DNA from: Guillardia theta CCMP2712
Lineage: Eukaryota; Protista; Cryptophyta
Assembly: GCF_000315625.1 (NCBI RefSeq)
Contig: NW_005434653.1
Span: forward strand, 105,615 to 169,614
DNA: 64,000 bases
Direction: 5' to 3'
Positions 9,897 to 63,861 of this stretch are shown here, one piece after another. The position numbers and the translations under genes are program-made. The notes beneath the pieces are model-generated. The model worked only from the letters and a program-made list of their open reading frames with translations. It had not been told where the DNA came from and made no database searches. Within the stretch, counting starts at the first letter, position 1. Each line of letters starts with the position of its first letter.

Positions 9897-12030
9897 TTCC
9901 TCTGGTCTCCGTGGAGTCTTGGAAGGATCTGCTGCTGATCTTGCTCAGCCTGCATGTCAGGGCGTGCAGTATCGGAGCAGAGCTCTCTGGAGCCCAAGCA
10001 GAGCAGCTCGCTGCTCCCTGTCCTGCTGGAAGCTGTCGCTGAAGCCTGCCATTGTCTCGTCATTCTCAATTTTTGCTTCCTTTCTCCCTACCTCCGGCCT
10101 TCAGGGCTGCCGCTGGTTCCCTCGGCTCCTTTCGCGCTATCTTTTCCGCAGGCGGGGCTTCCGCAGGCGCTTGCTGGGCCTGGACCCCCTGCTGCTGCAA
10201 GATCTGCTCTCAACCAGAATCGTCAACTCCCCCGCCCTCCGACATGCTCGCGAGCTCTGACCTTCTGCTGGAGCTTTTCCGCATGATGCCGCGCCTGTGA
10301 CACGTGGTCAGTTGCCCAAAGTCTTGCTCTGATACGGAGCTCCGTACAGGAGGCGGCACAGCAGTCGGAGCTGCGGACTTGACGTGCTTGTCTGGCTGCA
10401 GAGGTATACGTCAGCGTCGGACTTTCAGCCCCAAGAGGCATCGAGGGGAAGGGAGAGAATGAGGAGAGAGGTTGGGCTAAGGACCTTATGGTTCGTTTTC
10501 TTCTCTGACACGAATAGAGGTTTTCCCGGTGCAATCTGTCGCCCTCTCATCAGTTCTGACCTCCTCCTGCCTGCGATATGGAGGAGGAGAATTGGGAAGT
10601 GGGGAAAAGAAGGGAGAAGTGGAGGATGAAGGAGGAAGAAGGAGAACGGGAAGGAGGAAGTGAGAGGTGGGGAGGGTAGGAGAGAGTGATACCTGCCAGT
10701 CAAGAGGAGCAACTCCGAAGCTCGACTCCAGCTTCTTCTTGATCCCCTAGAGAGGTAGCGGCTGAGCTGAGTCTTGTGCTGTCCGCAGTTCTGACCTGGT
10801 TCCTGACGATGGCGTCTCGATTGTTCTGAGAGTGCTCGGCTAGCTGAGCTTCCAGCTCATCGAGGTCGACCTTGTTGACCAGTCGATCGATAATGCTCTC
10901 GACCTGCTCCCGCCCGTCAGGCACAGGCTCGGAGGGCAAGGCCGGCCCACCTCCTCCAGGTAGGCGTTGTAGAGCTTCTTGGCCTCAGCCGGAGTCACGT
11001 CGGAGGAGCGGAAGTCTTCTTCCTGCCTGTTGTAGACGCTGCATAGGATGGTGATCGGAGGGAGGAAGAGCTCAGTCAAGACCTCAAGACTTTGTGCCGG
11101 ATCTTGATCTCTCTGCGGACAAAGGGATCCTGCCATAGCAAGTCATTCATCCCTGCTTCTCTCCATCGCTCTCGTTGCTGCCTCTCCATGTGTTGGCACG
11201 AGCTCCTCCTTTCTGCTCGCTGAGTCAGCGGGAGCAGCGGGAGAGTCTAGAGGAGACCTGAAGGAGAATGGCGAACNNNNNNNNNNNNNNNNNNNNNNNN
11301 NNNNNNNNNNNNNNNNNNNNNNNNNNNNNNNNNNNNNNNNNNNNNNNNNNNNNNNNNNNNNNNNNNNNNNNNNNNNGACAATAGTTTCCAGAATGGACAA
11401 CTCCATTACTTCTGCTTACCTTGGCGTTGTGAGCATCTTCCCACATAGGCATGATCACGTTCACGGAAGAGATGGTAGTTACACCCAACAGGAAGTTTGC
11501 TTGGTGGAGGAATGTTGTTGATCGTTCCCTGCGGTAGTAAGTTCTCAACTGGGACATCTCATTGTCGTTTTTCTTCTCACCCAGAAGTCTTCAATCGTAT
11601 CAAACTCACTCACTCGTTTCATGTTCATCGTCAAAGTCAGAGAGGGACAGAGGGAGGGGATGTACAAGCAGGTTCGCAGACAGCAGTCAACAAGAGGGAG
11701 AGCAGGGGCGAAGGAGGATCGGAAGAAGCATGAGGGAGGAGTTCACTTTGTTCGCTCTGAACGCACTTCCACAGCACGGTTCACAGAGGGTGTGCCCACA
11801 AGGAGCGATGAGCAATCTGATCTGCAGAGAAAAGCGTCAAAGTTGCCCTGACTCTAGCATGACAAATACAGTCGGCGACGAGTCCTGGCAGAAGCTGCAG
11901 GCACTGAGCGCTACCTCCACATCCTCCCACATCCTCTGATCAGCTCCTCCTCATCATCATCGTCGCCGTCGTCGCCGTCGTCTCAGTAGCTCCAACACTC
12001 CATGGGCCTGCCTGGGGCAACCAAGGTCAA
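9897..12030 (-). CDS. Hypothetical multi-exon protein spanning a scaffold gap
   Basis: Exon-like segments bounded by GT/AG: FLHQANFLLGVTTISSVNVIMPMWEDAHNAK; ELFLPPITILCSVYNRQEEDFRSSDVTPAEAKKLYNAYLEE; VESIIDRLVNKVDLDELEAQLAEHSQNNRDAIVRNQ. Ends uncertain. Confidence 0.45.
11277..11376. other. Assembly gap (100 N)
   Basis: Run of N. Confidence 1.
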
Positions 12031-14555: not shown

Positions 14556-16796
<2,241 letters not shown>

Positions 16797-21094: not shown

Positions 21095-23460
21095 CTAGAT
21101 TACGCTGCCCGGCCGCCCGGGAAATAAATGTGATTGCACCCTGTCATGTCCTGCCACATGCCGTCCTGCAGCGATCTGATTCCTAGGTTCCTGCTGTCTT
21201 CTTCATGGTCCTCCTACGTCGTCCCTATCACAGTTGTTGCTGTCCTCTCCATGAATATCTTTCAGCATCTGTGCCCTTAAGTTCGTTCGACAGGTGATAG
21301 TCATGATCGTGTACGAGTCGATCAGCTCTCACCATCCAGTTCTACGAACCCTCCAGCTGTGGCACAGCCCAACACGTGTGTTGTCGGTGCAGTTTGGTTG
21401 ATGCAAAAGGATGCAAACGCTATTCTGAAGGTATGCAGAATAGTGCGGGATATGCTTTCATCTTGTATGAGCATGGGAACTAGTTGGCTCGGATCGCAAT
21501 GAGAATGTGGAAGCATGCACCTTGTTCAGTAGAAAGAGGGTGAAGGGAAAGAGTGCGCTTCTGAGAATCTTTGACGACCCTGAGGCTTCTAGGATTTCGG
21601 CTTCAGATGATCCCAACACCCAAGCATTACTTGATCTGGAATCCAACAATGTAAGCCGACGCACTCGAGAGATGTATGCTTATCGAATTATGGGTATGAT
21701 CGAGTTCTTCCCGGAGATCGGCAGTAAGCGCAGACGGCGTAGAAGAAGAGAATGCAGATACCTCAGACGTGGCAGGTCACGAGCGTCAGCCAGAGGCAGT
21801 AGCCAACACTGTGATAGTATCAAGCAGAGTGTCCACAGTCCAGGGGTATAAAAGTGCGTTGAAATATCTTTACAGACGCAGGAATGTTAGGTTTGCGGCA
21901 ATCTTGTTGAAAATTTGATGACAAGGGGTCTGATTAGGGAACACATTACTATCAGATTTATTCCGGAAGTTCTACTGGAGGCCATGGGAGGAGAACACGG
22001 CCCGACAGCCTCGTTTTAGGAGAACCTTGACAGAGAGCGTTGGAAGGGAATGGAAGACCTTGTCATGCTAAGCCTATGACTGTATCTCAGGACACCATTC
22101 AAGCTGTGGGACTAGGAATTGGATCCGTGACCGGTCGAAGAATCCGAGAGGCAGATCAAGGAGAACGAAGTGAAGGGTTCTGGCGTGAGGTTCTGGGAGA
22201 CTTGATTGCTTGAAGTAAACGAGCTTGAACACCTGTACAAACCTATTTATCACCTCTGTGATGACATCAACGCGTTCTTGGAAGTAAACGAAGGAAGAGT
22301 ACTTTTCATTGATGCACCGGGTGGAACAGGGAAAACGTTTCTTCTAAATATGATCCTCACGAGAGCAAGGCTTAGTGGAAAGAATGCAGTAGCTGTAGCA
22401 TCTTACAGCATTGCAGCAACCCTTCTTCACGGCGGACGACCAGCGCTTTCCGCTTTTAAACTTCAACTGGACATTTATCGGACAGGCTGAGACCCGCCGT
22501 GTTGCAACATCTCAAAGGACTCTGCAATGAAAAGGTTCGTTGCTCAGTGTCCTATGATTGTATGGGACCAGGTCAGTATGGCAGAAAAGAAAGCCTTGGA
22601 AGCTGTATAAAACAGATGACAAGACACTAGAGATGCCACCTTGACATCTGTATGGGCGGAGTGTTTGCTGTTCTGGGAGGTGACTTTCGTCAAACCGGAG
22701 ATTGAGGCGTCCACCAAGGCTTCGTCCTTGTGGACCAGAGCTCAACCCCTCAGTCTCAGAACAGACAAGCGTGCTGCGTTGAGTGGGGAAGTATACGCGC
22801 AAGAGCTTGCGATCAGGTTACTGATGGTTGGTGAGGATCAACTCCCGACCCCGGGTTGACAGCATGATTCATCTTGCTCCAACTGTTTGCTCTTTGGTCG
22901 ACTCTCAACAGGAAACAGAACTGCTCGAAAACGTCCTCCCTGATCTCCTACACAATGTGCAGAGCTTGGCATCGTTGTCACGGCAAGGAATCCTTTCAGT
23001 GCCCGAGCAACAATGCCGCAGCTAAGGTGAACCTGGCAATCCTTCAACGACTTCCCACTCCGCCTAGAACGTATCATTCAATTGATACACGGACATAGAT
23101 CAGGAAGAAGTAGTCCAGTTCCCCAGTGTGGAATTTCTCCGACGCTCTCAGCCCGGGTGGGTTCCCTCCCCATGAGCTCTCGCTCAAGGTCGCTGCTCCC
23201 ATCATGCTAACCAACTCCCAAATTGTGTAATGGAACCCGACTTCAGCTATCGCAACATGGCGGAGGCAACTGTCATGACATGTTGCCACAGATGCAATTC
23301 AGTCCCCTTTCTTCTGTCCTTGGCGTTCACCATCAACAAGTCTCACGGGCAGTTCGATGGCTGACTGTCGCAGGCCTTCACCTGGGAACCCACACGGTGC
23401 TTCTCGCTCGGACATTTGTTTGTCGCCCTTTCCCGCGCACAGTAGCTAGGGATTACTCAA
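21095..23460 (+). mobile_element. Decayed Helitron-like RepHel remnant (PIF1 helicase pseudogene), unit 1
   Basis: PIF1 motifs in order but broken by stops and frameshifts: FIDAPGGTGKTFLLN, AVAVASYSIAATLLHGGR, IVWDQVSM, GDFRQ (GGTGACTTTCGTCAA), TYHSID, FPPHELSLKVAAPIML, CNGTRL, AFTINKSHGQ, VALSR. This is the Helitron-type PIF1 architecture. No intact HUH Rep motif was seen. Confidence 0.8.
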
Positions 23461-23831
23461 CTATTCAGCCTTCTGGAGCTTCGCAGGAGCTTCGGGGACT
23501 CGAGGGGGTGGTGGGGCTACCGAAACTACGGGGTACTAGGGGTACACAATCAGAGTTACTACAGTCCTCTTACCCAATCGCGCACCTCCCGCCATGGTAG
23601 GAACCGGCGGTCCCTCTCTGCCTCTCACCGCCCTTATGCTCCTTCCTGCCATCCATGCCTTCTGCCCCTGCGCACTCGATGTATGCATCCGGCCGAGGAG
23701 GACTGCTGTCTCGAGCTACATGCGCAAACTTGAAAGGCCATGAAGCCGGTACATGCATACGTCGCGCTTCTAGTCTCAACGCGCTGGAGTGTGCAGAGCG
23801 TAGGAGAAAGGGAGTGCCCGGGAGGACGAAG

Positions 23832-25757
23832 ATGTCCATGATGCAGCAAGAAGGAGACTATCGTGAGGAGATGATCTCTATAGGCGCGCAGATTGCTAGG
23901 GTGGAGGAGGAGATAGATCAGGTCAACCGACAGATCACAGAGGCAGAGAAACGTGCACTCGATCCAAACATTGACAAGGATGAGCGGCAATACTGGCGCA
24001 AGAAAGAGGATCGGCTTCGAAGGAAAGAGAAGCAGCTTCGAAAGAAAGAGGAGCAGCTCCGAAAGAAAGAGAAGCAGCTTCGCGATCTACTCCTGATCGA
24101 GAAGAAGAGGACTCAAGGTTCAAAGATGCTTGAAGACTTCCTGTCAAAACCTCAAGGTGATGCTAGCCGTGCACACGATTGACGACTGGAGGCACTGACG
24201 GGGCTGATAGGCGATCCGTTCCTGTCCTTCTTGAACGAGCTTTGCCAGGCTGCGAGGGCAGGCAGGACTTACTCTGCTCAAGAGATTGTGAGCTTCTCGA
24301 CCTTCTTGGGAGGGAAAGCGATTTTCGGAAATCAGCTGTTCCTTCGAGATTGCTACTTGGAGATGAAGCAGGTAATTGCAGAGTACTTCCGCTTGGACAC
24401 GGAGACGCCGGAGAATGGGCAGGTCGTCCTCACAGGGAGTCCAGGGATAGGGAAGTCATGCTTCGCCTACTTCTTTCTTCTTCAGCTTCTCGGCTCTGAT
24501 GAGGAAGTAGTCTATCAGGTAGGAAACGAGCACTGGTACTTTGATGGGGCAGAATGGAGTCAGTTTGGAGATGTGGCCGTCGCTGTAAACTTTCTCATGA
24601 AATTCCGGGGGTGGTACATCTGTGACCTGTACAAAGGCCTGGGGAGCTACGTGTTAGCACGTTTGGCGAAGACAATCATACTGTCTTCACCCAAGCTTGG
24701 AAGGTTCAAGGACATTCTGAACAATGGAGCGGGGCGATACTTTCTGCCAACATGGACTGATGAGGAGATGTCAATCTTCATCAAGATGCAAGGGGGTCGC
24801 GTGAACGAAGAAGAAGCAAAGAATATCGTCGAGGATTGGGGGAACGTACCGAGGAATGTCATAGTGAGGCCAATAGAGACACTTGAGCAGGAGATACAGA
24901 CGATAACCTCACTGTCGTCGCTACAGGAAAAGATGCAAGCAGCAGTGAACCAAGACCTGGGATCGCCATCGAGACTGATTCACCTGGTCCCAAGCTCAGA
25001 CTACAAGACTGTCAGCGCTCGAGCATGCTCGCAGAAGGCCGCGGAGAAGATCTTTGCGGGACTTGTCAAAACAGACTGGGATAGGCTTGTAGAGCTGGTC
25101 TTCTCAGGCTCTGATTCTGGGTTATATGGGGCGGCAGCTCTAGTTTTTGAATGCTTGGCACATGAGGTGCTGAAGAAAGGAGGGAGATACAGATTGCGCA
25201 GTCTAGGGTCGGGTGAGGATGATGAAGGGGCAAGGGAAGAGATAGATTTGCGTATGAAGAAGTCGCAGGCATACTTTGAGTTCTCAACAACAGGACTCAA
25301 CGAGTGGAAGATCATGGAGAACACATATTGCAAGCCCAAGGCATCGAACTTCCCTTGCGTGGCCGGCGTGGATGCGCTTTTATTGTCAGATCAGGAGGTC
25401 CTCTACATGTTCCAGATGACGATAGCAGGAAAACACCCGACCAAGCTTGGACCCCTGTGTAGGATGTTGACAGCTCTACGAGCCAAGAACAAGTTTGAGA
25501 GGGTGTGCCTTGTGTTTGTTCTACCCTCAGAGCTTGAGGGGAAGGCACGTTGGAGACGAGCTCAGGTTCTCACCCACGACAAGACAGCAAGTGAGATGGA
25601 GAAGCAGCAGATGGAAAACGTTACTCAGCACGCGATCTTCTTGTCCAAGGAAGACGTGGCATGGCTAAAGGGAGCGGAGATCAGCATCCAGCTCGTAGAC
25701 AAGGCACGGTCTGAGAGGGAAGAGCAACTGGAGGGAGGCGATGAGGCGACACCATAA
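23832..25757 (+). CDS. Crinkler/RHS (CR)-type effector: coiled coil + P-loop NTPase + REase-fold nuclease, copy 1 (presequence frameshifted)
   Basis: Exon 1 is coiled coil (KEEQLRK repeats); 54-nt intron 24157-24210. Walker A VLTGSPGIGKS, YICD, ILSSP, YFLPTWTDEEM, WGNVPR, FECLAH; REase-like KPKASNFPCVAGVDAL..FQMTIAGKHP. The upstream ATG (23594) is put out of frame by a 7-nt insertion at 23729-23735. Confidence 0.85.
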
Positions 25758-26129
25758 GGAACTGGAATCCGTGACGTTGCTGTGGGCTGAAAGAGTGGAA
25801 GGCTTGTAGTAGCTCTAGCGGCTACAGACGATTGACAGCTCATGAGGTCATGGGTGAGATCCATGGCGGCAGTCACGGTGACGAGCACTGTAGCTCGGGT
25901 AACCAATATATGTATCTGTATGAAGCTTCGTGTTGGGACAGAGATTGCATCGTTCGACGGACAACACAATGATCTAGATCACATTCGATACAACTCCTCG
26001 AGACTAACGCGGACCAAGGGAATGGATCATGCCCAGTACATGCACACTCTCACAAGACCGTCCATCCATATTGAACAGCGACGCAGAGCGAACTTGGCGC
26101 TCCGCCGCGAAAACACGACCAAGATACAT

Positions 26130-26355
26130 CAATCATCACTTGCATCGCCATCATCTCCATCTTCTTCTTCTTCTTCTTCGTGTTCTCCTTCATTACCTCG
26201 ATTACCTCCGTCATCATCATCATCATCATCATCATCGGGCTAATTACTACCAACATCGTCATTTCCATCTTCTTCTTCTTCCTCCTCCTCCTCCTCATCA
26301 TCATGATGATCATTATGATCATCATTATCATCTTCTTCAACAAGAACAACAACAA

Positions 26356-26422
<67 letters not shown>

Positions 26423-26470
26423 GTCATCATCATCGTCATCATCATCATCATCATCATCATCATTATCATG
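26130..26470. repeat. (CAT)n/(CTT)n trinucleotide tract
   Basis: Seen directly; the counterpart at ~30170-30450 has diverged differently. Confidence 0.9.
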
Positions 26471-26649
26471 TGAAATGTCCGAGGCTAGACTCTCGCTTCT
26501 GCATACCTGGTTCCACATGACAGAACAGCATGCCCAAGAGAAAATCAAAGGAGCTGCCGGACTCTCAACTTCCTCTGACAGGTCTCATCTCCTTCAAGAT
26601 GTTGAGGAGTGCTTTATACTCTGGCATGGATAGACTTGTCTTGCCCTCG

Positions 26650-27520
26650 TGGGCCTGCATCACACCGTCGCTCTTCGTCCGGGTAACCCCTATCACAGCG
26701 GCTGCTGTCCTCTCCATGAACCTTCCAGCACCTGTGCAACGAGCCACCTCAACTGCTTGGCATAGGCTGAGCAAACAATATAGCTCCGATCAGTAGTCTC
26801 AACAAACAGATTGATGCCTCCATGGGCCAAGTGTCAGCTGTTCTGGCAGGTGACTTTCGTCAAACCGGAGATTGAGGCGTCAATCAAGTCTTCGTCTTTG
26901 TGGACCAGAGACCCCGGGTTGACAGCATGATTGATCTTGCTCCAACTGTTTGTTCTTTGGTCAACTCTCAACAGGAACTGGTCGAAAAGTCTATTGAGAG
27001 TCTGGTCAACTCTCAACAGGAACTGGTCGAAAAAGGCCGGGATCTGTGAGTCCATGACCGGCTGGAGTACGAGGACAATCAGGAGAGTCGAGAAGCTTGA
27101 CCCTGACAAGCTATTTCCCGCCGGCTCCCAGATTCCAGATTTCAGATTTTTTCATACAAATATAAGTCAATTTCTTTTTTTTTCCTCCAAATGTTTTAGT
27201 CATTTTAATTTGAGAATGAAACGATGCGGTTGACTTTCCCAGATTTTGCTTTTCGAATGGGCAGGCACTATATGGAAATATACTATTAGCTCAATCGAGA
27301 AAAATTGTTAGAAGGTAGGGAGGGTACGCTGGGAGCATCAAATATGAACAGCAAGTGGACCCCACCCCCTGTAAGTATGTATTGAAAGCACCGGTGAATA
27401 TTTCGGTGTGAATTTCAAATCACTTTGAATTGAGTCAAAAATCTGGAATCTGGGAGCCGGCGGGAAACGGCCCTATATAATACTGTCAACATTTTCAAAC
27501 AATGTCGCTCTTTCCCGTAC
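26650..27520 (+). mobile_element. Internally deleted Helitron-like remnant, unit 2
   Basis: 26688-26737 matches 21222-21275 (CCCTATCACAG..GCTGTCCTCTCCATGAA). 26840-26990 matches 22665-22930 (GGTGACTTTCGTCAAACCGGAGATTGAGGCGTC; CCCGGGTTGACAGCATGATT). 27500-27520 matches the VALSR region. Confidence 0.8.
27114..27467. mobile_element. MITE-like element, 354 bp, with perfect 29-bp terminal inverted repeats
   Basis: TTTCCCGCCGGCTCCCAGATTCCAGATTT (27114-27142) and its reverse complement (27439-27467) enclose an AT-rich non-coding interior. Absent from unit 1. No clear TSD. Confidence 0.8.
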
Positions 27521-27690
27521 ACAGCCTACGGTAGCTAGGGATTATTACTCAACTACTCAGCCTTCTGGAGCCGCAGGAGCTTCGGGGACTCGAGGGGGTG
27601 GTGGGGCTACCGAAACTACGGGGTACTAGGGGTACACAAACAGAGTTACTACAGTCCTCTTACCCAATCATGAATCGCGAACCTCCCGCC

Positions 27691-29796
27691 ATGGTAGGAA
27701 CCGGCGGTCCCTCTCTGCCTCTCACCGCCCTTATGCTCCTTCCTGCCATCCATGCCTTCTGCCCCTGCGCACTCGATGTATGCATCCGGCCGAGGAGGAC
27801 TGCTGTCTCGAGCTACATACGCAAAGGCCATGAAGCCGGTACATGCATACGTCGCGCTTCTAGTCTCAACGCGCTGGAGTGTGCAGAGCGTAGGAGAAAG
27901 GGAGTGCCCGGGAGGATGAAGATGTCCATGATGCAGCAAGAAGGAGACTATCGTGAGGAGATGATCTCTATAGGCGCGCAGATTGCTAGGGTGGAGGAGG
28001 AGATAGATCAGGTCAACCGACAGATCACAGAGGCAGAGAAACGTGCACTCGATCCAAACATTGACAAGGATGAGCGGCAATACTGGCGCAAGAAAGAGGA
28101 GCAGCTTCGAGAGAAAGAGAAGCAGCTTCGCGATCTACTCCTGATCGAGAAGAAGAGGACTCAAGGTTCAAAGATGCTTGAAGACTTCCTGTCAAAACCT
28201 CAAGGTGATGCTAGCTGTACCCACGTTTGACGACTGGAGGCACTGACGGGGCTGATAGGCGATCCGTTCCTGTCCTTCTTGAACGAGCTTTGCCAGGCTG
28301 CGAGGGCAGGCAGGACTTACTCTGCTCAAGAGATTGTGAGCTTCTCGACCTTCTTGGGAGGGAAAGCGATTTTCGGAAATCAGCTGTTCCTTCGAGATTG
28401 CTACTTGGAGATGAAGCAGGTAATTGCAGAGTACTTCCGCTTGGACACGGAGACGCCGGAGACTGGGCAGGTCGTCCTCACAGGGAGTCCAGGGATAGGG
28501 AAGTCATGCTTCGCCTACTTCTTTCTTCTTCAGCTTCTCGGCTCTGATGAGGAAGTAGTCTATCAGGTAGGAAACGAGCACTGGTACTTTGATGGGGCAG
28601 AATGGAGTCAGTTTGGAGATGTGGCCGTCGCTGTAAACTTTCTCATGAAATTCCGGGGGTGGTACATCTGTGACCTGTACAAAGGCCTGGGGAGCTACGT
28701 GTTAGCACGTTTGGCGAAGACAATCATACTGTCTTCACCCAAGCTTGGAAGGTTCAAGGACATTCTGAACAATGGAGCGGGGCGATACTTTCTGCCAACA
28801 TGGACTGATGAGGAGATGTCAATCTTCATCAAGATGCAAGGGGGTCGCGTGAACGAAGAAGAAGCAAAGAATATCGTCGAGGATTGGGGGAACGTACCGA
28901 GGAATGTCATAGTGAGGCCAATAGAGACACTTGAGCAGGAGATACAGACGATAACCTCACTGTCGTCGCTACAGGAAAAGATGCAAGCAGCAGTGAACCA
29001 AGACCTGGGATCGCCATCGAGACTGATTCACCTGGTCCCAAGCTCAGACTACAAGACTGTCAGCGCTCGAGCATGCTCGCAGAAGGCCGCGGAGAAGATC
29101 TTTGCGGGACTTGTCAAAACAGACTGGGATAGGCTTGTAGAGCTGGTCTTCTCAGGCTCTGATTCTGGGTTATATGGGGCGGCAGCTCTAGTTTTTGAAT
29201 GCTTGGCACATGAGGTGCTGAAGAAAGGAGGGAGATACAGATTGCGCAGTCTAGGGTCGGGTGAGGATGATGAAGGGGCAAGGGAAGAGATAGATTTGCG
29301 TATGAAGAAGTCGCAGGCATACTTTGAGTTCTCAACAACAGGACTCAACGAGTGGAAGATCATGGAGAACACATATTGCAAGCCCAAGGCATCGGACTTC
29401 CCTTGCGTGGATGCGCTTTTATTGTCAGATCAGGAGGTCCTCTACATGTTTCAGATGGCATCGGCAGGACAACACCCGACCAAGCTTGGACCCCTATGCA
29501 GGATGTTGACAGCTCTACGAGCCAAGAACAAGTTTGGGAGGGTGTGCCTTGTGTTTGTTCTACCCTCAGAGCTTGAGGGGAAGGCACGTTGGAGACGAGC
29601 TCAGGTTCTCACCCACGACAAGACAGCAAGTGAGATGGAGAAGCAGCAGATGGAAAACGTTACTCAGCACGCGATCTTCTTGTCCAAGGAAGACGTGGCA
29701 TGGCTAAAGGGAGCGGAGATCAGCATCCAGCTCGTAGACAAGGCACGGTCTGAGAGGGAAGAGCAACTGGAGGGAGGCGATGAGGCGACACCATAA
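27691..29796 (+). CDS. CR-type effector (coiled coil + NTPase + REase), copy 2, with in-frame signal+transit-like presequence
   Basis: MVGTGGPSLPLTALMLLPAIHAFCPCALDVCIRPRRTAVSSYIRKG... is continuous with the coiled coil; 54-nt intron 28205-28258; same NTPase motifs as copy 1; REase-like SDFPCVDAL..FQMASAGQHP. Alternative in-frame ATG at 27670. Confidence 0.88.
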
Positions 29797-30804
29797 GGAA
29801 CTGGAATCCGTGACGTTGCTGTGGGCTGAAAGAGTGGAAGGCTTGTAGTAGCTCTAGCGGCTACAGACGATTGACAGCTCATGAGGTCATGGGTGAGATC
29901 CATGGCGGCAGTCACGGTGACGAGCACTGTAGCTTGGGTAACCAATATATGTATCTGTATGAAGCTTCGTGTTGGGACAGAGATTGCATCGTTCGACGGA
30001 CAACACAATGATCTAGATCACATTCGATACAACTCCTCGAGACTAACGCGGACCAAGGGAATGGATCATGCCCAGTACATGCACACTCTCACAAGACCGT
30101 CCATCCATATTGAACAGCGACGCAGAGCGAAGCTTGGCGCTCCGCCGCGAAAACACGACCAAGATACATCAATCATCACTTGCATCGCCATCATCTCCAT
30201 CATCATCGTCATCCTCCTCTTCTTCTTGTCTTCTCCTTCATTACCTCCATCACCATCATCATCATCATCATCATCGTCATCGTCATCATCCTCTTCTTCT
30301 TGTCTTCTCCTTCATTACCTCCATCACCATTATCTCATCATCATCATCATCTTCATCATCATCATCATCATCTCCTACGCCATCATCAACCCTTCCATGA
30401 TCTCGTTCATCTACATCAACATATCCTTCATCGTTACCTCCATCATCTACATAGTCTCTGGAGCTTCGGTCTAGACAAGGAGACTTGCCCATGTCGCGTG
30501 GCAAGTATATACAACCCAAGAATGAGAATAGGACACATTTCAAGAGTGTAGGGCGATGCAAACACATATTTTTTCCGTGTGCTCTGCATGTCAGTGCGCT
30601 GCTTTCATGCAATCTTTTTCCTAGTCAAAGTGCTCAAGATGTAAAATGTCCGAGGCTAGACTCTCACTTCTGCATACCTGGTTCCATATCACAGAACAGC
30701 ATGCCAAAGACAATATCCATGACCTGCCGGACTCTCAACTTCCTCTGACAGGTCTCATCTCCTTCAAGATGTTGAGGAGTGCTTTATACTCTGGCATGGA
30801 TAGA

Positions 30805-30831
30805 CTTGTCTTGCCCTCGTGGCAAGACAAG
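30805..30831. other. Perfect 11-bp stem hairpin, candidate Helitron-like 3' terminal structure
   Basis: CTTGTCTTGCC-CTCGT-GGCAAGACAAG, followed within ~10 nt by an abrupt switch to AT-rich flank. A canonical CTRR end is absent. Confidence 0.6.
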
Positions 30832-31104
30832 ATTCACTCAATTAAATAATAAATATACCCTAATAAATTAATGTATCAAAAAGTAAACCGTTTTCAAAAT
30901 AGATATTCATCATTGCATACTTGCTGCGAAAACTTGATAAATGTGAGCCCTTTACCATAAGTTGCCCTACTAGGATTTTGTGGGTGGTACCCAATGTAGT
31001 GAAGGGGCGAGGGGAATCGGGGGTAGGGGTACCCCTCAGTAGGGTAGCAGATCTGGAGGGGTGTAGGAAGAGCCTCATGATTATGGCTGGAGGCGTACCA
31101 GCAG

Positions 31105-31260: not shown

Positions 31261-31470
31261 TGGAGAAAGGGACGCAATTGAGGGTGGAGAGGGAGGAGAG
31301 GGGATTGAGGGAGGAGGGATGGGACCAGGATCGAGTAGCCATATACAGGAAAACAGTAGTATTTTATCTACACGCATGGGATTGCATGAAAGCTGAGTGC
31401 CAACTTTGACAAACATGTCTTGTTGGAAATTGAAGTTTATTGTGCAGGCCCTCGGGATGCAACAGTTTTG

Positions 31471-32999
31471 ATGAGACTCAGCTCAGGCCTCTTCTTCTTA
31501 CTTGTGTTGCAATCTTCCTCCTCTCATCGAACCGTTCGGCCCACCCTTGCAACCACAACCATGATGCAGCTGATCAAGAACGCGGATGTCTATGCTCCTG
31601 CGCATCTTGGACTCTGTCACGTGCTCGTGGGATGCGGAAAGATCATGAAGATCTTCCCTGGAAACGCTTCGCTGCACGAGCAGACGTTCTTGGATCTGAA
31701 CATCTCCACCAAGGACCTCGACGGCAAGAAAATGATTCCCGGGCTCATCGACGGCCACGTACACTTGACAGGAGGAGGAGGGGAGGCAGGTTTCAGGACC
31801 AGCGTCCCTCCTATCCCTCTCTCCAACTTTACCCTTGCTGGGGTGACCACGGCAGTTGGTGTGCTGGGGACGGACGACTGCGTACGTTCAACAGCCAGCC
31901 TACTTGCTCGAGCCCGCGGCCTGAGGGAAGAAGGGTTCTCAAGCTACATCCTTACAGGAGGCTACCATGTTCCCGTGACGACCCTGACTGGGTCAGTGAA
32001 GGAGGACATCGTCCACCTCGACCTCTGCATTGGATGCGGAGAGCTTGCTATCAGTGATCACAGGTTCTGCTCCTGCTTCCCTCTCGCCGGCCTGTCCTTC
32101 GTTTCAATGTCTCAAGCTGTGTCCTTTCTACTCCCTTTCTTTCCGTCCCTGCTTCACTCCTACCTCCTATCTTGCTTTGCTTCTTCCAACTTTCTCCTCT
32201 CCCATTTCTGCATCAGCCTCTCAGTCCTCCTTTCGACTCTCCTACACCTCCACCACCTCATTCTTGATTAGGACTGACATTTCTTTCCAGGTCCAGCCAG
32301 CCAACCTTCGACGAGCTCGTGAGGATAGCTGGCGACTGCCACGTTGCGAACCTGATGACCGGAAAGGCGGGAACCCTTCACCTGCACATGGGGGCAGGGC
32401 AGAGGAGGATGGAGATGGTGAAGAGAGCGCTGGAGGAGACAGAGATTCCTTCCAGGATCTTCAACCCGACGCACTGCAACAGGAACCTGCCGCTGCTGGA
32501 GGAGGCGATGGAGCTCGCGCTCCTCGGGTCTACCATCGACGTAACGGCTGGGACGGGGAAGAAGGGAGGAGGTGGAGGGCCTACAGCAGCGGAGGCCATC
32601 CGGAGGTACTTGAAGGACGACAGGATGCTTCCTCCAGAGAAGATCACGTGCAGCTCTGACGCGGGAGGGAGCATCCCGACATTCGACGAGCAGGGAAACT
32701 TGTTGAGGCTCGGGTACGGGACCTCCGCCAACCTCCTCGTGGCGATCAACGAGCTTCTGCATCCTACTGATGGAAGCGACAGCTTACCACTGGACGTCGT
32801 CCTCCCTCCCTTCACCAGCAACTGGGCGACGCTGCTCAAGATCGATGACAAGAAGGGAAGGATCGCTGAGGGCTGCGATGCTGATCTGGTCGTCCTGGAG
32901 GAGGCAGGAGAAGGAGTTTCTGTCTCGGACGTCATGGCCATGGGCGTTTGGCACGTGGTCGATGGGAAGGCTGTCGTCAAAGGGACGTTTGAGAGCTGA
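31471..32999 (+). CDS. iadA: Isoaspartyl dipeptidase (beta-aspartyl peptidase, amidohydrolase family)
   Basis: PGLIDGHVHLTGGGGEAGF, AGVTTAVGVLGTD, YILTGGY, GELAISDHR/SSQPT across intron 32064-32290, GKAGTLHLHMG, PTHCNRN, SSDAGGSIP, KGRIAEGCDADL, KGTFE. Confidence 0.95.
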
Positions 33000-63761: not shown

Positions 63762-63861
63762 NNNNNNNNNNNNNNNNNNNNNNNNNNNNNNNNNNNNNNN
63801 NNNNNNNNNNNNNNNNNNNNNNNNNNNNNNNNNNNNNNNNNNNNNNNNNNNNNNNNNNNNN
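63762..63861. other. Assembly gap (100 N)
   Basis: Run of N. Confidence 1.

Follow-up and report, generated by a model that had tools for sequence, protein, structure and literature searches.

Delivery to other cells has been proposed for proteins of the CR type, whose commonest C-terminal architecture joins a nucleoside triphosphatase (NTPase), a helix-turn-helix (HTH) segment and a restriction endonuclease (REase) domain (Zhang et al. 2016, via PMC5289972). In this study we examined a 64,000-nt stretch of DNA (the window), nuclear DNA of the alga Guillardia theta CCMP2712 located on scaffold JH992985.1 (849,342 bp; exact look-up of an annotated twin gene; the window covers roughly its positions 105.6-169.6 kb), in which a gene with a body of this type, copy 2 of a tandem pair, is preceded by a region that can be read as a plastid-targeting presequence. 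The body of copy 2 is homologous to header-bearing CR proteins and likewise spread across free-living eukaryotes, and its layout, an NTPase, a helical linker and a REase-like domain, agrees with this architecture. It differs from CR proteins in that its product would carry a coiled coil in place of the ubiquitin-like header, and the REase fold is here weakly indicated; unlike CR effectors of pathogens, moreover, it comes from a free-living alga, where it occurs in tandem multicopy arrays.

Two further systems are close to this locus. The kinetoplastid RHS proteins (PF07999) possess a related P-loop domain, and the G. theta family is likewise multicopy and found beside mobile-element debris, but the copy 2 protein itself has no RHSP match and the relation holds at the superfamily level only. 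AACRNL, a header-degenerate Crinkler-like gene of free-living eukaryotes, has been described as a selfish element of the genome (PMC12957317). In concept both cases coincide, a Crinkler-type gene that lacks a functional delivery header being amplified beside transposable elements in a free-living eukaryote, whereas the effector is an ADP-ribosyltransferase there and an NTPase with a REase-like domain here, in another host group.

Regarding the presequence, examples of cryptophyte plastid signals and the rule of Phe at position +1 have been described (PMC12136025), and the candidate motif of copy 2 agrees with them. Like the bipartite signals of cryptophytes and diatoms (ASAFAP-type), it combines a hydrophobic core with a basic tail, and the residue at -1 is small, with Phe and Pro at +1 and +3, but it differs from them in its non-coding-like evolution, in its frameshift or absence in some paralogues and in its overlap with a predicted RNA helix, while its tail is Cys-rich, unlike the examples in PMC12136025.

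A full-length member of a recently amplified gene family

Copy 2 belongs, as a full-length gene, to a nuclear gene family of G. theta that was amplified recently. Its nearest protein matches are gene models of G. theta CCMP2712, and it lies in one of two tandem units that repeat at a distance of ~4.1-4.2 kb, the other of which holds copy 1 (23594-25757, + strand), the annotated gene GUITHDRAFT_105614 (P0183, 623 residues; gene 23832-25757, intron 24157-24210, + strand). Both copies are 95.8% identical across 2.4 kb. The public annotation of copy 2 consists of a 116-residue C-terminal fragment alone (P0019, 29446-29796), despite both of its exons being open.

Exon 1, as annotated for the twin, extends from a Met cluster (27916/27922) through an acidic/basic coiled coil (27916-28204, + strand), the annotated start of copy 1 being the equivalent Met. 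It is followed by a 54-nt GT..AG intron in phase 1 (28205-28258, + strand), common to the public models P0183, P0004 and P0005, inside which an in-frame stop (28228-28230) falls; the sole indel seen among the copies in the intron region is of 1 nt. Exon 2 (28259-29796, + strand) encodes the NTPase, the helical linker and the C-terminal domain up to the stop codon, is open over 511 codons and yields an AlphaFold2 model with a pLDDT (predicted local distance difference test score) of 90.4. Compared separately, the exon-1 piece corresponds to a prefix and the exon-2 piece to a suffix of P0183, and their lengths sum to 623; all searches with copy 2 were likewise made with separate exons.

The original prediction had placed the start of this gene further upstream. 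The frame opened by the ATG at 27691 indeed contains 77 open codons up to the Met cluster and continues via the coiled-coil stretch to 28204, so that the product would measure ~683 residues from 27691 and about 606-608 from the Met cluster. The segment 27691-27921 (+ strand), the candidate presequence, is open and in frame with the body, and could be aligned in ten copies; a second in-frame ATG at 27670 belongs to a short insertion found in copy 2 alone.

Our analyses lead us to regard as probable, at a confidence somewhat above even, that copy 2 is a header-less CR-type NTPase/REase-like gene translated from the Met cluster, and that the candidate presequence is a conserved structured leader which mimics a bipartite signal. 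Translation would thus start at 27916/27922 as in the annotated twin, and the resulting acidic, non-hydrophobic N-terminus would imply a cytosolic or nuclear location. The 230 nt upstream would constitute a conserved structured 5' leader, in which a pyrimidine tract pairs with a purine tract ending at the start codon and translates by chance into an uncharged hydrophobic peptide, and its open, in-frame state would be owed to the youth of the copies. The protein itself would be an NTP-regulated module acting on nucleic acids, of a type employed in conflicts within genomes or between organisms; its location, nuclease activity and conflict role are features that we infer by analogy with the family.

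Substitution pattern of the leader

The leader set comprised ten copies, namely the two in the window together with L001, L002b and L003 to L008, nine of which are complete, one contig being truncated. The pooled ratio of nonsynonymous to synonymous differences (pN/pS) reached ~1.4 in the leader, with a pS of 0.066, as opposed to 0.76 in the coiled coil (pS 0.18) and 0.62 in the body (range 0.5-0.75, pS 0.17), values built from small counts and from pairwise comparisons that share history and are non-independent. Variable columns at codon positions 1, 2 and 3 of the leader numbered 22/20/11 in the ten copies and 13/12/7 in five of them, while the bodies of the same five copies gave 55/54/89 (p = 0.002). 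Third codon positions are consequently the least variable of the leader, and codon periodicity is absent. The lower synonymous divergence of the leader relative to the body implies constraint at the nucleotide level, and the whole pattern points to a leader under nucleotide-level rather than codon-level constraint.

The reading frame itself has been retained in part of the family. Among the nine complete leaders, seven preserve both ATG and frame and read on without a stop into the body, whereas in copy 1 and L004 the frame is broken by one 7-nt length change each; the bodies of both are fully open, and in the body each is near-identical to an intact sister. An eleventh locus, L009 (GUITHDRAFT_104239, P0182), is homologous from 27940 onward only and lacks the leader. 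The N-terminus of L009 is hydrophilic and K/R-rich, with two K/R clusters ~ten residues apart, and its sequence suggests a nuclear localisation signal. The expectation that paralogues keep an A-F-x-P presequence therefore stood for the seven copies with ATG, frame and A|F junction, and failed for the two frameshifted ones and for L009. An intron inside the leader that would restore the frame of copy 1 was considered and dropped, no GT..AG pair in the right phase being evident in an alignment inspected by eye, and none being backed by a relative or a tool. None of the public models, including P0183, P0004 and P0184, starts at the 27691 ATG; all of them begin 3' of it.

The targeting presequence of the original prediction is not borne out as a maintained coding region, given a pN/pS of 1.4, a 22/20/11 distribution of variable columns, two out of nine frameshifted leaders and a paralogue devoid of leader.

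A predicted RNA helix closing at the Met cluster

RNAalifold, applied to the ten copies, predicted a large stem-loop domain in the leader, closed by a helix between 27710-27738 and 27886-27915. The 5' arm (27710-27738, + strand) is pyrimidine-rich (77% C+T) and is the very segment that translates as the hydrophobic core, while the 3' arm (27886-27915, + strand) is rich in purines, its last base directly preceding the ATG of the Met cluster. Four compensatory pairs were counted in this helix, one of them a C-G to G-C swap, against 1.1 +/- 0.8 in shuffled controls (1/500 of which reached four) and 0-1 in slid controls, the helix having been predicted on the same sequences as were later used for these counts. 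The three length differences among the copies map to predicted unpaired stretches or to a small 5' hairpin. A search of Rfam with positions 22000-31000 gave no match.

The composition of the 5' arm is relevant to the peptide that it would encode. None of the three frames of the pyrimidine tract contains a stop, and two of them are free of charged residues; the hydrophobic peptide may therefore be considered partly a by-product of composition.

A signal-like N-terminus and the case for plastid import

The signal-like reading as such was confirmed in the DNA: a hydrophobic core, an A|F-x-P junction and a basic tail are opened by an ATG and continue in frame with the coiled coil. The hydrophobic window is uncharged, with a mean Kyte-Doolittle value of 2.29, and at the A|F-C-P junction the -1 residue of the candidate signal is small, with Phe at +1, Pro at +3 and a basic, acid-poor stretch thereafter. 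Its likeness to the presequence of ilvC (ketol-acid reductoisomerase; 16796 to ~15250, - strand), also proposed earlier, holds: a signal-like start occurs at 16796(-), with KARI_N and KARI_C in the downstream pieces of open reading frame (ORF), and the mean hydropathy of this presequence is 2.27. The likeness is one of ~10 residues at the peptide level, homology of the DNA having been judged by reading both stretches only. With its bipartite-signal-like first exon, ilvC served as a positive control. An exact-pattern scan of JGI metagenome contigs with the leader core gave 0 matches.

We also applied a crude filter, requiring an uncharged 10-residue hydrophobic window, small residues at -1/-3, Phe at +1, and a basic, acid-poor composition of the next 25 residues. 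Of the 505 open stretches in the window that begin with ATG and span at least 60 codons, 4 passed it, a rate that is indicative only, since the filter was built after the candidate had been seen. The four comprise the starts at 27670 and 27691, ilvC, and a start at 1328(-). The latter is a second bipartite-signal-like N-terminus, with a Leu-rich core followed by S-Q-S|F, and likely belongs to a plastid protein; the ORF pieces downstream of it had no Pfam match.

These features allow a different scenario, in which translation begins at 27691, a signal peptide is cut before the Phe, and a transit peptide brings a long NTPase-nuclease isoform into the complex plastid, by the rule of Phe at +1 into its stroma; a short isoform might be made from the Met cluster as well. 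Several observations favour it and weigh against a purely structural leader. The ATG at 27691 stands in a strong initiation context (CCCGCCATGG), the filter passed so few open stretches that the resemblance exceeds a crude chance rate, and the motif resembles both the ilvC presequence and the examples of PMC12136025 with their rule of Phe at +1. Besides the retention of ATG, frame and A|F junction in seven of the nine complete copies, nearly all leader copies preserve the A|F-C-P junction, substitutions in the hydrophobic core are hydrophobic-to-hydrophobic in every case, and among the three frames of the pyrimidine tract hydrophobicity is highest in that of the ATG. The single-sequence fold of the leader (-98 kcal/mol) has a z of only -1.95, the prediction and the pair counts of the helix are not independent of each other, and the same holds for the pairwise pN/pS values with their small counts. 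Hydrophobic N-termini are in addition found in two other G. theta subfamilies; among the proteins outside the subfamily of copy 2, P0013 and P0015 (from transcripts) and P0196 (a gene model) begin in this way.

On the other side stand the absence of codon-level constraint, with third positions least variable and a synonymous divergence well below that of the body, the two young copies that are out of frame and nevertheless have intact bodies, and L009, which does without a leader. The upstream ATG is part of no public model, the portion that would act as transit peptide is Cys-rich, and the collections searched contained no transcript-derived protein of the subfamily of copy 2, there being no MMETSP member in its clusters; an exact look-up of the annotated twin returned the genome record only. 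We consequently hold import of a long isoform into the stroma to be unlikely, though deserving of attention. A version with two functional isoforms, a short cytosolic or nuclear one and a long one bringing a Crinkler-type NTPase-nuclease into the complex plastid, with the structured leader setting their ratio, is speculative and in our estimation improbable.

Transcripts of other subfamilies and the case for secretion

The signal-like stretch could alternatively be a plain secretion signal, with the Phe at +1 incidental, and copy 2 a secreted CR-type toxin acting against other cells. This would be in line with the delivery of CR proteins to other cells suggested in PMC5289972, and with the hydrophobic N-termini of the other G. 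theta subfamilies, a feature also seen in a choanoflagellate homologue. Every argument against translation of the leader applies here too, however, and in a cryptophyte an N-terminus of this kind, where Phe at +1 opens a basic, acid-poor segment after the signal peptide, would be taken for a plastid signal and not for a secretory one. Two homologues known from transcripts, P0008 and P0190, furthermore begin with a hydrophilic sequence. Secretion is accordingly the scenario that we consider very improbable.

The transcript of P0013 provides a further view of 5' regions in this gene family. Its contig (L010:1-720) includes a 5' region of 513 nt, the leader thus measuring 513 nt or more, and several upstream ATGs precede the start. 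The protein begins with a hydrophobic segment, and the Ser/Thr-rich stretch after it has no Phe, an arrangement with the look of a periplastid-type signal; this hydrophobic start could instead represent read-through of the leader. Long leaders with upstream ATGs hence occur in the gene family, and longest-ORF calls made from such transcripts are uncertain.

The NTPase module and its family

The assignment of the body to the CR-type NTPases, made in the original prediction from the sequence of copy 2, was borne out by its homologues. An exhaustive search retrieved 965 representatives at E<=1e-3 (244 at E<=1e-10), those named including chytrid(s), volvocine algae (Volvox, Chlamydomonas), a choanoflagellate, a jakobid and a xanthophyte. 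Among 90 aligned homologues, Pfam identified the Crinkler header in four (best E 4.5e-26), the RHS P-loop (RHSP) in three and nSTAND3 in 22. The header-bearing P0105, to which the best of these E values belongs, aligns to query residues 4-431 (E 1e-15), indicating that the whole NTPase-linker-C-terminal module is common to both proteins, and two G. theta paralogues carry the UniRef label 'Crinkler (CRN) family protein'.

In copy 2, the ubiquitin-like Crinkler header (Pfam PF20147) was not found at E<=1 in either reading of exon 1 or in the body, exon 1 giving weak coiled-coil-type Pfam matches only. No Pfam family exceeded its threshold on copy 2; the best match, to nSTAND3 (PF20720), lies around Walker A, covers ~35 residues and scores 17.9-19.2 bits, below the curated cut-off of 27.2.

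The P-loop NTPase domain (28279-28848, + strand) contains a Walker A motif G-x-P-G-I-G-K-S, the Walker B Asp and a conserved Arg. G74, D132, G204 and R208 are invariant across the 90 homologues, K75 is present in 89 of them, and E307, H311, D378, Q392, T394 and others are near-invariant. Structure prediction likewise upheld the NTPase fold, Foldseek matching the N-terminal half to AAA+/STAND NTPases (ClpA/B/C, p97, RuvB, NLR) with E of ~4e-5 to 4e-4 and a probability of up to 1.0. Sequence searches of the Protein Data Bank (PDB), with the single sequence and with a profile, gave matches confined to P-loop regions. The NTPase is followed by a linker of four short helices in the secondary structure of the model (28849-29013, + strand), a possible counterpart of the HTH in the NTPase+HTH+REase architecture.

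A REase-like C-terminal domain

The C-terminal alpha/beta domain (29014-29718, + strand) is likely to adopt a nuclease (REase) fold, although sequence and structure indicate this fold weakly. Its near-invariant residues form the series E...H...D...Q-x-T...H, and the domain model (pLDDT 86.8) displays the order helix, strands, helix, strand expected of a restriction-endonuclease core, with E307, D378 and Q392 (of the Q-x-T) located at the secondary-structure elements expected of PD-(D/E)xK nucleases. The position of the Lys of this motif is occupied by Thr in 82/90 homologues and by Lys in 4/90, a His and a Lys being found 5 and 8 residues further on. Foldseek gave no significant match for the C-terminal domain alone (best E: PDB, 0.057; BFVD, 0.008), and its sub-threshold matches show an excess of restriction-enzyme and PD-(D/E)xK entries (OkrAI, YaeQ, XPF, NucS, McrC, NucC, Mrr).

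Selection on the body and the case for decay

A last scenario treats the whole locus as decaying passenger DNA of repeat- and transposon-rich regions, functionless, with leader and body both drifting. Consistent with it are the body pN/pS of 0.5-0.75, the deviation of copy 2 at 2/32 of the near-invariant positions checked, the fragmentary state of some paralogue models, the missing transcript-derived proteins, and the PIF1 remnant, the MITE-like insertion (miniature inverted-repeat transposable element) and the long terminal repeat (LTR) retroelement that adjoin copies. Decay would, however, hardly leave five bodies of 505-511 codons fully open, substitutions enriched at third positions (55/54/89), indels in multiples of three throughout the coiled coil and the body, and intact NTPase motifs. 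We therefore assign a low probability to it, and retain a translated header-less gene behind a structured leader as the explanation that we prefer.

Genomic context of the tandem array

The two tandem units, of ~4.1-4.2 kb each, occupy 22641-30980 (approximate bounds, + strand) and show direct repeats D3-D8 with spacings of 4039-4170 nt. The content of a unit is, in order, a PIF1-helicase remnant, a spacer, the leader (~230 nt) with the gene, and a trinucleotide microsatellite block, and a similar array structure occurs on another scaffold (L002). With its tandem arrays, the transposon debris alongside and its relaxed constraint, the family behaves like a semi-selfish multicopy gene. A transposon label for the shared unit of 2.2-2.7 kb was considered and dropped, a search for terminal inverted repeats around it having yielded low-complexity matches only.

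Several elements accompany these copies. A PIF1-like helicase fragment (Pfam PF05970, E 5e-15) is found at 22206-22487, and a 100-nt piece of it recurs at 26811-26910, at the start of the second unit; both are probably remnants of a helicase-bearing mobile element. The spacer 5' of copy 2 contains a perfect 29-nt inverted repeat (27114-27142 / 27439-27467) around 296 nt, a MITE-like insertion (27114-27467) that is missing from the homologous spacer of L002. Immediately 5' of the family copy on L003 (L003:1-2820) lies a Ty3/gypsy-type retroelement ORF with reverse transcriptase, RNase H, integrase and chromodomain. The long trinucleotide microsatellite blocks between gene copies (26050-26520 and ~30100-30400) yield homopolymer-like ORFs of His, Ile, Met, Asp and Ser in all frames. 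Just 3' of the array, 31420-32271 holds the opening exon or exons of a gene resembling amidohydrolases (Pfam Amidohydro_3, below cut-off), and assembly gaps appear in the window as 100-N runs at 11277-11376 and 63762-63861.

Conclusions

Our results correct the annotation of copy 2, a full-length gene instead of the 116-residue fragment on public record, and reveal in G. theta several tandemly amplified header-less subfamilies of CR-type NTPase/REase-like genes. If import into the plastid were nevertheless true, a conflict-family nuclease would be aimed at organelle or endosymbiont-derived DNA, and a toxin-family nuclease in a secondary plastid would represent a new kind of host-organelle interaction. 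The preferred interpretation, a gene translated from the Met cluster behind a structured leader, implies that a structured 5' leader rich in pyrimidines can pass very well for a bipartite plastid signal and so give rise to false positives in algae with complex plastids. It also adds a cryptophyte to the free-living eukaryotes whose 'effector' modules look like genes of intragenomic conflict or selfish genes.

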